A DNA stretch of 64,000 nt, taken from Diadema antillarum (Eukaryota). The notes below the pieces were generated by a model. It was not told where the DNA came from, ran no database searches, and saw only the letters and a list, made by a program, of their open reading frames with translations. The position numbers and the translations under genes are program-made. Position 1 is the stretch's first letter; the number at the start of each line of letters is the position of its first letter. Location: contig NW_027271753.1 in NCBI RefSeq assembly GCF_040938485.1, forward strand, positions 1,922,001 to 1,986,000. Reading direction: 5' to 3'. Shown here in pieces: positions 29,551-34,362 of the stretch.

Positions 29551-29857
29551 ATGGCAGAACTAGGCCTTCCTAGCGATCCCACCGCTGTCGACGCCGAGTG
29601 GAAGAGAATCCAACAAAATACTTTCACGCGATGGTGCAACGAGCACTTAAAAACTGTCGATGATCTGGGGCTATTTATTTACAATCTCGAGACGGATCTT
29701 TGCGACGGTCTTCTGCTTCTTACCCTGCTGGAGGTGCTTGCTAAGAAGGAGATCAGTCGGTTTAACAAGTCACCGACGTTCCGTCCGCAAAAGATCGAGA
29801 ACTGTGCAATAGCCCTCAAGTTCATAGAAGATCAAAAAATCAAGCTTGTCAACATAG
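29551..29857 (+). CDS. Filamin-type actin-binding-domain protein, exon 1 (CH1)
   Basis: MAELGLPSDPTAVDAEWKRIQQNTFTRWCNEHLK...LETDLCDGLLLLTLLEVL...IKLVNI matches filamin CH1. In-frame stop upstream at 29494; donor ATAG|GTAATC, phase 1. Confidence 0.95.
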
Positions 29858-30463
29858 GTAATCTAACCAGTAGTATACCTTTTTTCCTTGTAGACTTCAT
29901 TAACTTACTTTACTTGGATTTACTTGGAAGTAGAGACATAAAGCGTTGCTCATCTCCCCCCCCCCCCTCCCTTCCCAGTCTCACCATTCCTCTGATATGC
30001 AGATGGATGGGGTTTTACTTTATAGGGAATGGCTGTTCTCGAGGATAGTTTTGAACTGATTTACACTTATGCTCTATATCATGCTGTCTGGCAAGGGGTT
30101 TCAGTTGCTGCAACTGCGAACAGAGAAAGACTTGTGGCGATAGCATAGTATACCTGGATCTAGGTTTTCTCACTTTCATGCTGTTTTGATACTATAAATC
30201 CGTATAAACAGGTAAATAATATCTATTAGTGCATCCTTTAGTATAACTATTGCTCTCCGATGTACTGGCACACCGCTCGGGAAGATAAAGTACTGACACC
30301 GACATACGGTATTATCGTTGTGATCTTTGAGATCATCTCTCTCTTCGTGTGTCTGTACAAACACACACATATTACGCACACACATACACACAGATACACG
30401 CAAACACTAACACTAACACAAACACATCCTCTCTCCCTCGTTATCGCTTTGTCTTATCAACAG

Positions 30464-30706
30464 ACGCTTCAGATATCCTCAAAGGCAACCTCAAGTTGAT
30501 ACTGGGATTGATATGGACCCTCATCCTGAAGTATCAGATCTCCCTTCCGATGATGGGCGATAGTGGAGAGGACAAAGGTATCACACCCAAGGTTGCGTTA
30601 CTCAACTGGGTTAAGAGTAAGATATCCAGCAAACCTCTCCAGAACTTTCACAAAGACTGGAACAACGGACTGGCCCTTGGAGCCTTGGTGGATGCTGTGG
30701 CACCCG
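30464..30706 (+). CDS. Filamin-type ABD protein, exon 2 (end of CH1, start of CH2)
   Basis: Acceptor TTATCAACAG|AC. Encodes DASDILKGNLKLILGLIWTLILKYQISLPM...TPKVALLNWVKSKI...DWNNGLALGALVDAVAP. Donor CCCG|GTAAGA, 243 nt phase 1-1. Confidence 0.95.
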
Positions 30707-30779
30707 GTAAGAGAGAAGTGTATCGGGTAAAGAGTATACAAAACCGTACCAAAATCACGTGATCTAATCTACTGTTTCC

Positions 30780-30809
30780 ACAAGGGGGTGACGATAACAA
30801 TGAAAAATA

Positions 30810-30849
<40 letters not shown>

Positions 30850-30975
30850 CGATGATAATGATAACAATAATAAAAATAATTAAATACGATGTAATAGTAT
30901 TAATACTAATACTACTAATACTAATACTTCTACTACTACGAATGATGATAATGACAATATTGATAATAATAATGG
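30780..30975. repeat. (ATG)n/(ATA)n low-complexity tract
   Basis: GATGATGAT and AATACTAAT runs. Confidence 0.85.
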
Positions 30976-31035
30976 AGTATTTGTAATGCACCTGAACCGG
31001 CTCTGTCTGAGTGCTCAAAAGGGACGAAAAATTCA

Positions 31036-31740
31036 TCAGCATGAAGAGAGAAAGAAAGAAAACAAAAAGAAAATGGAGTAATATCCTAAATTGAACAGTT
31101 GGGTTTTTTTTAGTACGGTCTTAAAAGAATCAACTGAGGAGATAATGCTGATAATATATAAAGGAAACTTGTTCCATAGAGAGGATCCGGTGTAAACAAA
31201 AGTCCTGTCACCTAACATGGTTTTTGTTTTGGGAACAATGAAGAGACATGTGTTATACAAGAACAAAGTAATCTTGAAGTGTGCTGCGGAAATGAAGAAG
31301 TAATGCACTTGGAAGCAGATCTATTGAAGCAATGTAAAACAAGAAGTAGCAGTTTAAATTGAATGCAGTATTGAACAGGTAACCAGTGGAGTGACTTACG
31401 TACAGGAGTAATATGGGAGTATTTTGGTGTAAGAGTAATAGTTCTAGTTGCGGGATTTTGGACCTTTTGCAGTTGTGACAGCTGCCTGTGAGGCAGAAGG
31501 GCGTTGTCGAAATCTCAGCAAGATGAGATCAAACATTGAACATGTACAATCTTTTCCATAACAGATCGAGTGAAGTAATTACGAATAAAACCTATATCAC
31601 GAGGCTGATATCCAACAGATTTACAGATGCTGTTTATTTGAGCAGACATAGACAGATAGATTATGTTGGAATCAAACATCACCCAAAATGTCTGGATGAT
31701 GTGTTTCGTGAACGTGGAAGAATTCTCAAAGGACATTGAG
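31036..31740 (-). mobile_element. Decayed L2/Crack-type LINE ORF2 3' fragment (intron 2 of the ABD gene)
   Basis: Minus frames give VPKTKTMLGDRTFVYTGSSLWNKFP...SVDSFKTVLK and MSAQINSICKS...IRNYFTR...EKIVH, typical CR1/L2 C-terminal motifs, with frameshifts. Confidence 0.8.
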
Positions 31741-32478
31741 TAGCTTTTTCTTCTTTTTTGTTTTAATCGTGAAAATCCGTATATGCTGGTTAGCTTGGTG
31801 TAGTCCTAGAGCCCCATTCAGTATGTCTCTGTATGCAAATATATAGACCTGGCTTGTGTCATGAAAAGGTCCATGCTTGTGTGAACACTTTTGTCGTGTA
31901 TCGTATAGGGGGAAATATTCTAACAGAACCAGGAGAATGCTGTAAGGTTAAAGCACAATCAAGTAATTGCGTTTCATTTTGTGAAATTTTCTGGGGTTTT
32001 TGTTTCTCTTTCATTTTAGCTTAGGCTTATAGTCAGAATCTATAAATCAAGTTCTGACATAAGATGTCTTCTTCAAAAGTAGTTTGGACAAACTGAATAG
32101 CCTCGAGAGCTGCCTTTAAAAAATACAGTTTCATCTTGTTCAGCACCAACTCCAGTTCAAAGATCTCTTAGAACAAGAAAGTCGTTTGATAAAACGAACA
32201 TTTATGCCTTCTTTGTTGACAAGAAATCAAACTTTAAAATGAAATTAAAAAAAAAAAAATTCCTGGGGGGGGGGGCTGGGTTACTTTTGCACGGTAAAGT
32301 GGTCTCTTTGATATCGTTCTGGGGGCACTTCATGAAGCGTTTTGTCCGACAAATTCGTCAGACAAAATTTTGCTCTCAGCCAATCAGATGCACGGGTTTC
32401 AGTAGCTTGTAACAGTTTGTCAGAAGAAAAAAAAAATGTGTTGATAATCAGTTTCGTGGTCCTTGTATGCATCTCTAG

Positions 32479-32576
32479 GTCTCTGCCCGGACTGGCAGAA
32501 GTGGGACCCAGGCAATAAGCTCCAAAATGCCACTGAGGCAATGAAACTGGCCGAGAGCTGGTTAGGTGTTCCGCAG
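32479..32576 (+). CDS. Filamin-type ABD protein, exon 3 (CH2)
   Basis: Acceptor ATCTCTAG|GT. Encodes [33 protein letters not shown]. Donor CAG|GTACGT, 98 nt phase 1-0. Confidence 0.95.
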
Positions 32577-32741
32577 GTACGTAAATCCATTATCCGTTAA
32601 GTTCTACACATCATAATGCTGTGATTTTATATGCTGTATGTTTTTACTGTAATTTTGTTTTTATATATTCTGTTTACTCCGTTTTGTGTTTTGTAGCATC
32701 GTAAGATAGAGTAATGATTATTATGATATAATCTTATCTAC

Positions 32742-33070
32742 CCATGGTAGCCTATTCAGTGTTAACAAAGTTCCCCATATCAAAGGGCGCCCTGCCATTA
32801 TTATACTTCCAGGGGGTGTTTCATAAAGCTGTTCGTAAAGTTACGAACGACTTACGAGCGACTGGTGATCAGTTCTTGTGCTGAATTATGGAAATTCTGA
32901 TAAGTGTAGCACATCAGAACTGATCACCAGTCGCTCGTAAGTTGTTCGTAACTTTACGAACAGCTTTATGAAACAAGGCCCAGTATTGTCAGGTACCTGA
33001 TACCCATTTTTGTATGTACATGGGTCGAGAGGGACGTTGTTTTATGCTGGAACCTCAGACCTGTCTTCTT
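32742..33070 (-). mobile_element. tRNA-SINE family copy 1 (interrupted by a MITE)
   Basis: Shares GGTAGCCTATT-AGTGTT...GGG(C/G)CCCTG and GATACCCATTT...TGGGTCGAGAG with the copy at 43531, and the first block with the copy at 39420. Confidence 0.55.
32813..32980. mobile_element. PIF/Harbinger-like palindromic MITE with CAG TSD
   Basis: Near-perfect ~70-bp inverted arms (TGTTTCATAAAGCTGTTCGTAAAGTTACGAAC...GTTCGTAACTTTACGAACAGCTTTATGAAACA), GG...CC ends, CAG on both sides (32810-32812, 32981-32983). Confidence 0.8.
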
Positions 33071-33234
33071 GTCCACTATACCACGATATATTATTGGGAC
33101 CCTTTGTTGTCCATATCTAATCGTTCTTTTTGGTCTCAAAATGTTCAAAAGCTTCTAAACTGATAAATCTATGACTGATTGCTATAGTACAACTAACTTA
33201 CTATAACCGTTATATTATCTATGACATTACAAAG

Positions 33235-33359
33235 GTAATTACGCCTGAAGAAATAACAAACCCAAACGTGGATGAGCTGAGTGTGATGACCTACGTGTCA
33301 TATTTTCCTGCAGCTGTTGTCAAGCCAGGTGCTCCCTGCCAGAAACCAGCCGACACTGG
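33235..33359 (+). CDS. Filamin-type ABD protein, exon 4 (end of CH2 and linker)
   Basis: Acceptor ACAAAG|GTA. Encodes [42 protein letters not shown]. The putative donor GG|GTAAAA overlaps an in-frame TAA (33361-33363). Confidence 0.9.
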
Positions 33360-34337
33360 GTAAAATTTTATCCAGATTATTGACTATTTCTATATAATGT
33401 TTTTATCTATTTATCTAAGCAGTGTGACTTGTGATGGCGCGAGCTCAGTCTAAATCGCGGACCGACATATTCTCTGCCAGGATCGCGCCATCTTACGTTT
33501 TAACGCGTGTAGTGCGTGTCGCGCTGATGGATTCGTGTAATGTTCGTTGTTCCAAAGATTTGTTATTCTGAAACACACAAATTCCCTTTGCTTCGATGTT
33601 CGTTAATCCAAAAATGAAATAGGGTTATTTTTTTCCAACACTTGTTGCGTTATTCCGATGGCTCGTTTACCCGAAAATGAATAAGGTTCGTTATTTCGAA
33701 GGTTTGAATACAACGACAAAAAGAAAGTACTTAGGGGCCTATACAAGCGAGCATTCGGAATAACAAAGCTTTGGAATAACGCCACAAAATGTAATATTAA
33801 TGGCAACTATATTAGATTACGTAGTGAGGTTGCAGCTTCACAACTTATCCGTTGAGCTGCACACAAATCTTTTCTCATTTACTTTTTTTGGACATAAAAA
33901 TCAAACAGACAGCTTGCATCCTTCTTATCTTTTTTTTTTGTGTGTGCTGCAAAAGCCATGCATGTAATTTCTAAATCGTCAATCAAGAACATTATTCTTG
34001 TGACAGTTTAGTGCAAAAACCAGTGGAAAAGTTGCGAGTTCGTGACGTTATTACCTCTGCTACATAGAGTATTTGCGAAACATTAAAATTCCACAACTTT
34101 CCTGTTTCTACTGGTTTCATAAAAAGGTTTGAATATTTTGTTTGTATGATACTTCGCAATTCATTAAAGCCAAATACTGGGGAACTGCACTCCAACTTAC
34201 AAATATTAAACAAGGGAGTTCAATTAGTGTTCAGTGTTTCTCTTCAACTGTATTTCAAGTCAGAATATGCTGACAAATCGAAATACACTTTCCAAAGAGT
34301 TTTATTCACATTAGCGTTCTATGTTTCTTCATTTCAG

Positions 34338-34362
34338 GAATGCACAGCCTGACGACGAATGA
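34338..34362 (+). CDS. Probable terminal exon of the ABD-only protein (adds NAQPDDE*; total 265 aa)
   Basis: Strong acceptor TTTCTTCATTTCAG|G. Phase 2 matches exon 4, the spliced CDS totals 798 nt, and an AATAAA lies at 35194-35199. Confidence 0.5.

Follow-up and report, generated by a model that had tools for sequence, protein, structure and literature searches.

We describe here a filamin-related gene of the sea urchin Diadema antillarum that encodes an actin-binding domain (ABD) without the rod of a filamin, and which we regard as very probably a real, separate and stand-alone ABD-only gene. It lies on the forward strand of contig NW_027271753.1, within a stretch of 64,000 nucleotides (positions 1,922,001 to 1,986,000) that we refer to as the window, and its features are collected in Table 1. 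All four exons have GT-AG borders, and splicing them gives an open frame of 257 codons followed by GG, in agreement with the four clean exons described in an earlier note on this DNA. Exon 1 holds the start codon, the N-terminal actin-binding stretch and most of the first calponin homology domain (CH1); its Pfam CH match has an E value of 5e-13, and the human FLNA ABD finds this exon alone at E 1.2e-27. Exon 2 carries a Pfam CH match at E 3e-10 and encodes, at the end of CH1, the helix DASDILKGNLKLILGLIW that is equivalent to actin-binding site 2 (ABS2). In tblastn searches with long filamins exon 2 is matched at E 1e-24 to 1e-27 and exon 3 at E 1e-10 to 1e-11, and exon 3, at 98 nt, has the same length in Diadema setosum and Lytechinus.

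The four-exon model with its final G is identical to the RefSeq protein XP_071507587.1 ("filamin-A-like", 258 aa; P0312), whose locus (GCA_040938485.1, contig JBFRCO010000865.1) is base-for-base identical to window positions 19551-43363. The gene is thus already catalogued as a predicted "filamin-A-like" protein, and is apparently uncharacterised in function. We found no description of an ABD-only filamin paralog in the full-text literature searched (filamin in sea urchin, invertebrate evolution and coelomocytes), so that the earlier note was right to call this a candidate for an undescribed component as far as that literature goes, but not with respect to the databases.

Table 1. Features of the mini-filamin locus and its upstream flank (window positions)
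Feature	Position	Strand	Details
Exon 1	29551-29857	+	ATG at 29551, donor GT at 29858; residues 1-102; phase-1 donor
Exon 2	30464-30706	+	AG/GT borders; end of CH1, CH1-CH2 linker, start of CH2
Exon 3	32479-32576	+	AG/GT borders; middle of CH2
Exon 4	33235-33359	+	End of CH2 through KPGAP to ...KPADTG; phase-2 donor GG/GTAAAA
Read-through ending	33360-33363	+	Last G of GGG, then TAA; ending of the RefSeq model, 258 aa
Short exon 5, alternative	34338-34362	+	25-nt coding part, (G)NAQPDDE-stop; 265 aa
Probable 3' untranslated region after exon 5	34363-34870	+	86-93.5% identical to D. setosum
Microsatellite in intron 2	30800-30960		Long, (GAT)n / (ATT)-rich
MITE-like palindrome in intron 3	32817-32975		60-nt arms, 98% complementary, 39 nt apart
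Fos-like bZIP gene, upstream neighbour	14000-21000; last coding open reading frame 20596-21000	+	Leucine-zipper/basic region
Non-coding block just downstream of bZIP	21360-25209		3.8 kb; 94% identical between D. antillarum and D. setosum

The encoded protein is a filamin-type ABD by sequence and by predicted fold. Over its whole length it matches the sequence of the FLNB ABD crystal at E 5.5e-93 and the FLNA ABD at 1.1e-92, and the next family among solved structures is alpha-actinin at E 3.5e-43, such that the E values of filamin ABDs lie 50 orders of magnitude below those of every other family. Pfam reports two CH (PF00307) stretches and no other domain. An AlphaFold2 model built on a 20-sequence alignment has a mean predicted local distance difference test (pLDDT) score of 87.8 and a predicted template modelling (pTM) score of 0.85, and its top 15 Foldseek matches are all FLNA or FLNB ABDs, with target TM scores of 0.90-0.97 for the ABD-only chains; superposed on the closed FLNA ABD crystal structure 2wfn it gives a TM score of 0.97 and a root-mean-square deviation of 0.8-1.0 Å. 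Pfam and the model together place a type-1 and a type-2 CH domain in a compact pair, as in the tandem-CH ABD superfamily, and the pair has the N-terminal CH1-CH2 arrangement of canonical filamins. The reading of this protein as a complete but divergent filamin CH1-CH2 domain that runs up to the KPGAP linker is therefore borne out by both the FLNB match and the predicted fold.

Filamins are defined by what is added to this head, a rod and a dimerisation repeat that provide for crosslinking, mechanosensing and scaffolding, and of these additions we find no trace in the window. We searched positions 1-64000 on both strands by tblastn with eight long filamins (amphioxus FLNC, those of Antedon, Anneissia, the horsehair worm Gordionus, Lytechinus variegatus and Asterias, a 903-aa filamin, and the 2281-aa D. 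antillarum filamin P0413), and they match only the four ABD exons, with no immunoglobulin-like (Ig) repeat match better than E ~1. Filamin/ABP280 repeats (PF00630) are absent both from the protein by Pfam and from the 64 kb by tblastn, which extends to the whole window the earlier finding that no such exon occurs in the following 30 kb. No further domain is predicted past the KPGAP tail, and hence no C-terminal dimerisation repeat. With neither an Ig rod nor a dimerisation repeat, the protein would be unable to crosslink or scaffold in the manner of a filamin. A search with the third CH domain of an Acanthaster protein likewise yields no separate third-CH exon in the window and re-matches only the CH2 exons 2-3. 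The same genome has a distinct canonical filamin, with isoforms of 2247-2281 aa (e.g. XP_071491352.1), on another contig, and in D. setosum the short gene and the canonical filamin are on sequence records of different sizes. In L. variegatus, by comparison, the records of the two genes have the same size and may represent one chromosome.

The reading frame can close in two ways, as the earlier note had proposed with a product of 258-265 aa, and each ending is supported by one Diadema RefSeq model. If the exon-4 donor is unused, the frame reads ...ACT GGG TAA (GGG TAA at 33358-33363), which is the read-through stop of the D. antillarum model; the alternative is a short fifth exon behind a polypyrimidine-AG acceptor, and its homologue (L009 18750-18774, ...NAQPDNE-stop) ends the D. 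setosum model (XP_072181164.1), with acceptor and frame conserved. In either case the D. antillarum protein ends 11-18 residues past KPGAP. Identity between the two species is 95% in exon 4, 94% in the first 140 nt past its donor, 85.5% in the rest of intron 4 and 96% in exon 5, a pattern that fits alternative endings, both of which would give an ABD-only protein. The homology breaks off abruptly near 34870, and the segment from exon 5 to this point is probably the 3' untranslated region (UTR) that follows exon 5, although its extent is one that we infer.

Annotated "filamin-A-like" proteins consisting of two CH domains only are present in four other species. The D. setosum protein (272 aa) uses the short fifth exon. 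In Lytechinus, exon 4 itself contains the stop, with a product of 257 aa in both Lytechinus pictus and L. variegatus (in the latter, one protein under four accessions), and the same holds for the 241-aa protein of the crinoid Anneissia japonica. The stops are separate ones in each lineage and follow KPGAP by 5-21 codons. Rebuilt exon models of these counterparts have the same intron positions as the window gene, which in turn shares their general character, with a length of about 240-270 aa, CH1-CH2 only, common introns and the motifs DASDI-KG and ILKY. No Ig-repeat match is found within 10 kb downstream of the short gene at the two loci searched, in D. setosum and L. pictus, and in the crinoid a convergent Death-domain gene limits the locus at 6.7 kb downstream. 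The ABD-only orthologs that the earlier note proposed to look for thus have candidates in four echinoderm species, with orthology insecure for the crinoid. Synteny gives no support to orthology, as the bZIP gene that neighbours the D. antillarum gene is missing from the 10 kb upstream of the Lytechinus and crinoid genes. A further candidate, Acanthaster planci XP_022095231.1 (P0032, 408 aa), is ruled out as an ortholog by its three CH domains and by its grouping with Jitterbug-like proteins (93/90). In both Lytechinus species (L010 14031-14040, L014 16942-16951) we also note that the stop of the short gene adjoins a donor-like GTATGG (AAATAG/GTATGG), so that the 3' UTR may be spliced there, much as after Diadema exon 4.

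The window ABD and the canonical filamin ABD of its own genome are 58.5% identical. Maximum-likelihood trees recover a clade of canonical bilaterian ABDs (support 99/97 and 100/100) from which the short proteins, that of the window included, are excluded. Its closest full-length relatives, at 70-73% identity over the whole ABD, are non-canonical filamins in which the ABD runs straight into PF00630 repeats, namely L001 (a coral-type filamin whose exon 1 is close to an Oculina patagonica protein), L007 (an AT-rich contig of 29% GC, whose Ig repeats lie at about the same distance, 38-49%, from coral-type and from bilaterian filamins) and P0302 (a spliced transcript with an Ig-bearing filamin). 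The short proteins and these Ig-bearing relatives share YIYNLETD, DASDI-KGN and ILKY, where canonical filamins have HI-NLETD, DSSDIVDG and ILHY. A search of representative sequences with exon 1 returned mostly exon-sized fragments of open reading frames from unannotated eukaryotic contigs, and an exon-1 word search, with candidates limited by length, returned nothing above 74% identity and nothing from D. antillarum. Placing all echinoderm ABDs in one clade is rejected by the approximately unbiased test (p-AU 5e-98, at a cost of 141 log-likelihood units), as is one clade of all echinoid ABDs (p 4e-4), but the data are compatible with a clade of the echinoid short proteins (p-AU 0.3). With its position outside the canonical clade the short gene is not a recent partial copy of the urchin filamin; the lineage is an old one, and the gene looks like a long-retained and faster-evolving offshoot rather than a recent broken copy.

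Selection on the gene was estimated from nonsynonymous (dN) and synonymous (dS) divergence by the Nei-Gojobori method with Fisher p values. Between D. antillarum and D. setosum dN is 0.057 and dS 0.225, giving a ratio (omega) of 0.256 (p 1e-7), and between L. pictus and L. variegatus dN is 0.048 and dS 0.116, giving 0.417 (p 0.004); between genera dS is saturated and dN is about 0.27-0.30. With omega significantly below 1 in two species pairs the gene is constrained, although loosely, and the neutral evolution that the earlier note had considered is not borne out. Between Diadema and Lytechinus the short protein is 68.8% identical (L. pictus), compared with 88.6% for the canonical ABD (L. variegatus). 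Conservation among the short proteins is 72% overall but 80% in the ABS-N equivalent, 92% in helix A and 88% in the ABS2 equivalent, 15 of whose 21 residues are identical to FLNA (with presumed segment limits), and W17, K113 and the ILGL-W motif do not vary among 20 ABDs. The earlier claim of a separate ABD-only paralog is accordingly sustained by the RefSeq model, the distinct canonical filamin, the short counterparts and the signs of selection.

How this protein relates to known systems differs with the system considered. With canonical filamins (human FLNA/B/C, Drosophila Cheerio and XP_071491352.1) it shares the filamin-type CH1-CH2 pair at 55-62% identity, the intron positions, KPGAP at the end of the ABD and the closed fold; it departs from them in having no Ig/ABP280 repeats, hinge or dimerisation repeat, in the placement of its ABD outside their clade, and in its signature of YIYNLETD, DASDILKGN and ILKY. 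The Ig-bearing non-canonical filamins (coral-type L001-L003, L007 and P0302) are the closest outside the genus and have the same signature motifs, although theirs are genes that reach PF00630 repeats 0.3-1 kb past the ABD, where the urchin gene stops. Jitterbug-type filamins have three CH domains followed by Ig repeats (bioRxiv 10.1101/2020.10.13.337626). Their CH domains are filamin-related too, but the window protein has two CH stretches by Pfam and not three at its N-terminus, and the Acanthaster protein, which is similar in lacking Ig repeats, also differs in having three. The short Jitterbug isoform, Jbug-PC, is not CH-only but Ig-only. Isolated filamin ABD constructs bind F-actin and follow filamin in their localisation, yet do not substitute for it (PMC7714767, PMC2275727), and in Dictyostelium a GFP-tagged filamin ABD alone has the localisation of full-length filamin and does not rescue its loss (PMC2275727). 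Engineered constructs of this kind (e.g. PDB 6d8c on F-actin) have the same ABD-alone architecture, with the difference that they are engineered fragments whereas the urchin protein would be the product of a natural, conserved gene.

Taking these observations as a whole, the explanation that we favor, with moderate confidence, is that the gene encodes a monomeric side-binder of F-actin that competes with crosslinkers or marks sites for them. Actin binding as such we consider fairly probable from the comparison with filamin ABDs. The monomer would bind the side of actin filaments through the same CH1 surfaces as filamin, and once bound could occupy, or compete for, crosslinker sites; alternatively, it could mark or stabilise particular filament populations without joining filaments to one another. 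Such a naturally conserved head-only gene would supply, ready-made, a physiological competitor or filament marker of the kind that cell biologists engineer as ABD fragments, and would offer a handle on how crosslinker occupancy is tuned in the cell. Knock-outs and live imaging are both feasible in L. pictus and L. variegatus, which makes the idea directly testable. The practical value is limited, given that RefSeq already lists the gene as a predicted protein and that its function is one that we infer.

Several observations weigh against this proposal. The omega values of 0.26-0.42 are fairly relaxed, and the two Diadema species share 87.9% identity in the short protein where they share 98.5% in the canonical ABD, a divergence about eight times faster. 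The segment equivalent to ABS2' is conserved at only 58%, and for this value as for the other segments the limits of the FLNA actin-contact segments (ABS-N, ABS2' and ABS2) are presumed ones, reportedly those of Iwamoto et al. 2018. A CH1 loop has a Diadema lineage-specific insertion of 3-6 residues. A clade of the four short echinoderm proteins that includes the crinoid is marginally rejected (p-AU 0.035), such that the crinoid gene is at most a tentative ortholog, and a shared origin of the ABD-only state only a possibility. Finally, the case for expression of the short gene comes from the RefSeq models.

A different reading of the same protein is that the tandem CH pair has been kept as a protein-protein interaction module, in the manner of the parvins or of the plectin ABD with integrin beta4, acting as an adaptor or regulator for which F-actin is not the main partner. 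The much faster evolution relative to the canonical ABD and the weak conservation of one segment equivalent to an actin contact both speak for this reading, as do several charge changes that are fixed throughout the non-canonical group (K for D in the DG-N turn, and K for H in ILHY), and the structural matches include tandem CH domains with non-actin partners, such as the plectin-integrin structure 3f7p. Parvins are small proteins of essentially two CH domains with no crosslinking rod, but they are not close relatives, as no parvin is found among the PDB sequence matches at E <= 1e-20. However, conservation within the protein is highest in helix A and in the equivalents of ABS-N and ABS2, and the same signature is present in the Ig-bearing L001, L007 and P0302, which are presumably actin crosslinkers, so that the signature is no mark of lost actin binding. 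We therefore consider a role as an interaction module unlikely, and prefer the F-actin side-binder.

Two further readings concern the gene itself, and both are improbable. The first is that we are dealing with just the 5' part of a longer gene, in which exon 4 or 5 splices to Ig or other exons beyond the window, and that the mini protein is an annotation artefact. Exon 4 does end in a good phase-2 donor, and the RefSeq models of D. antillarum and D. setosum differ at their 3' ends, but the exon reached from that donor stops after seven codons, with the stop conserved in D. setosum, and the Lytechinus and crinoid stops lie inside exon 4, the crinoid gene being closed off by its convergent neighbour. 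Ig exons are absent from the 30 kb downstream and from the rest of the window, as they are from the 10 kb searched in D. setosum and L. pictus, and the canonical filamin is on another contig, or in D. setosum on a record of a different size; we give this possibility very little weight. The second is that part of a filamin gene was duplicated and the locus, transcribed or not, is what remains of that copy as it decays, with no function of its own, for which one can point to the elevated rate with its omega of 0.26-0.42, and to the 11 amino-acid differences between two copies in one assembly. It is highly doubtful given that five species, echinoids as well as a crinoid, have an intact frame and no damaged splice site, that omega is significantly below 1 in two independent pairs, that the predicted fold is confident and complete, and that the position outside the canonical clade excludes a recent copy. 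The least probable reading is that the gene is one unit of a tandem multi-ABD gene like that on L008 (below), whose upstream ABD exons splice to a cryptic acceptor in exon 1 (29573/29574). The pyrimidine-rich AG at 29573 would indeed keep the frame with a phase-2 (exon-4) donor and the L008 exon does fuse one ABD end to the next ABD start, but there is no second ABD in the 64 kb on either strand, the bZIP gene fills the upstream flank, and all echinoderm models begin with their own ATG here.

The preferred reading as an ABD-only side-binder can be extended, tentatively and with considerably less confidence, to the history of the family. We may be dealing with an ancient second filamin lineage that split off before the canonical bilaterian ABD signature arose and was pared down to its head in echinoderms, where the head would be a natural competitor of crosslinkers, an "anti-crosslinker", that tunes the stiffness of the cortical actin gel in eggs, embryos or coelomocytes. 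The placement of the ABD beside those of Ig-bearing coral-type filamins has a bearing on the diversification of the filamin family in early animals.

Other proteins with related ABDs came to light in the searches. On L008, a Tara Pacific metagenome scaffold, a single exon (3147-3545) encodes both the last part of one ABD (...FPAAKLKPGA) and, in frame with it, the first part of another (DPTAVDAEWK...), and ABD-ABD exons of this type recur in the protein clusters P0005 and P0197, with 13 and 5 members; the fused exon implies that a coral-associated eukaryote has a gene in which two or more filamin-type ABDs follow one another in tandem. Two complete open reading frames on short transcript-like contigs, P0029 (324 aa) and P0031 (353 aa), contain an ABD with the same non-canonical signature and no Ig repeats, flanked by hydrophobic stretches that resemble a signal peptide or transmembrane segment, and these may be membrane-anchored ABD-only proteins.

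Within the introns of the window gene, the microsatellite of intron 2 gives rise to spurious poly-Asp and poly-Ile reading frames on both strands, and the palindrome of intron 3, which resembles a miniature inverted-repeat transposable element (MITE), falls in an alignment gap relative to D. setosum and is thus probably a lineage-specific insertion; an Rfam scan of the 64-kb window gave no match. The second copy in the same assembly, XP_071504359.1 on contig JBFRCO010000713.1 (L013 10001-14164), has its 11 amino-acid differences all in exons 1-3 and is nearly identical to the window from exon 4 to about 1.9 kb downstream. Both copies have the bZIP neighbour upstream, and L013 is most simply the other haplotype, left uncollapsed and with mosaic divergence. 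The RefSeq product of the bZIP neighbour has 315 aa, with PF00170/PF03131 matches. The block behind it stands out from the surrounding non-coding DNA, which is 82-86% identical between the two Diadema species, and it may be a constrained 3' UTR or a regulatory region.

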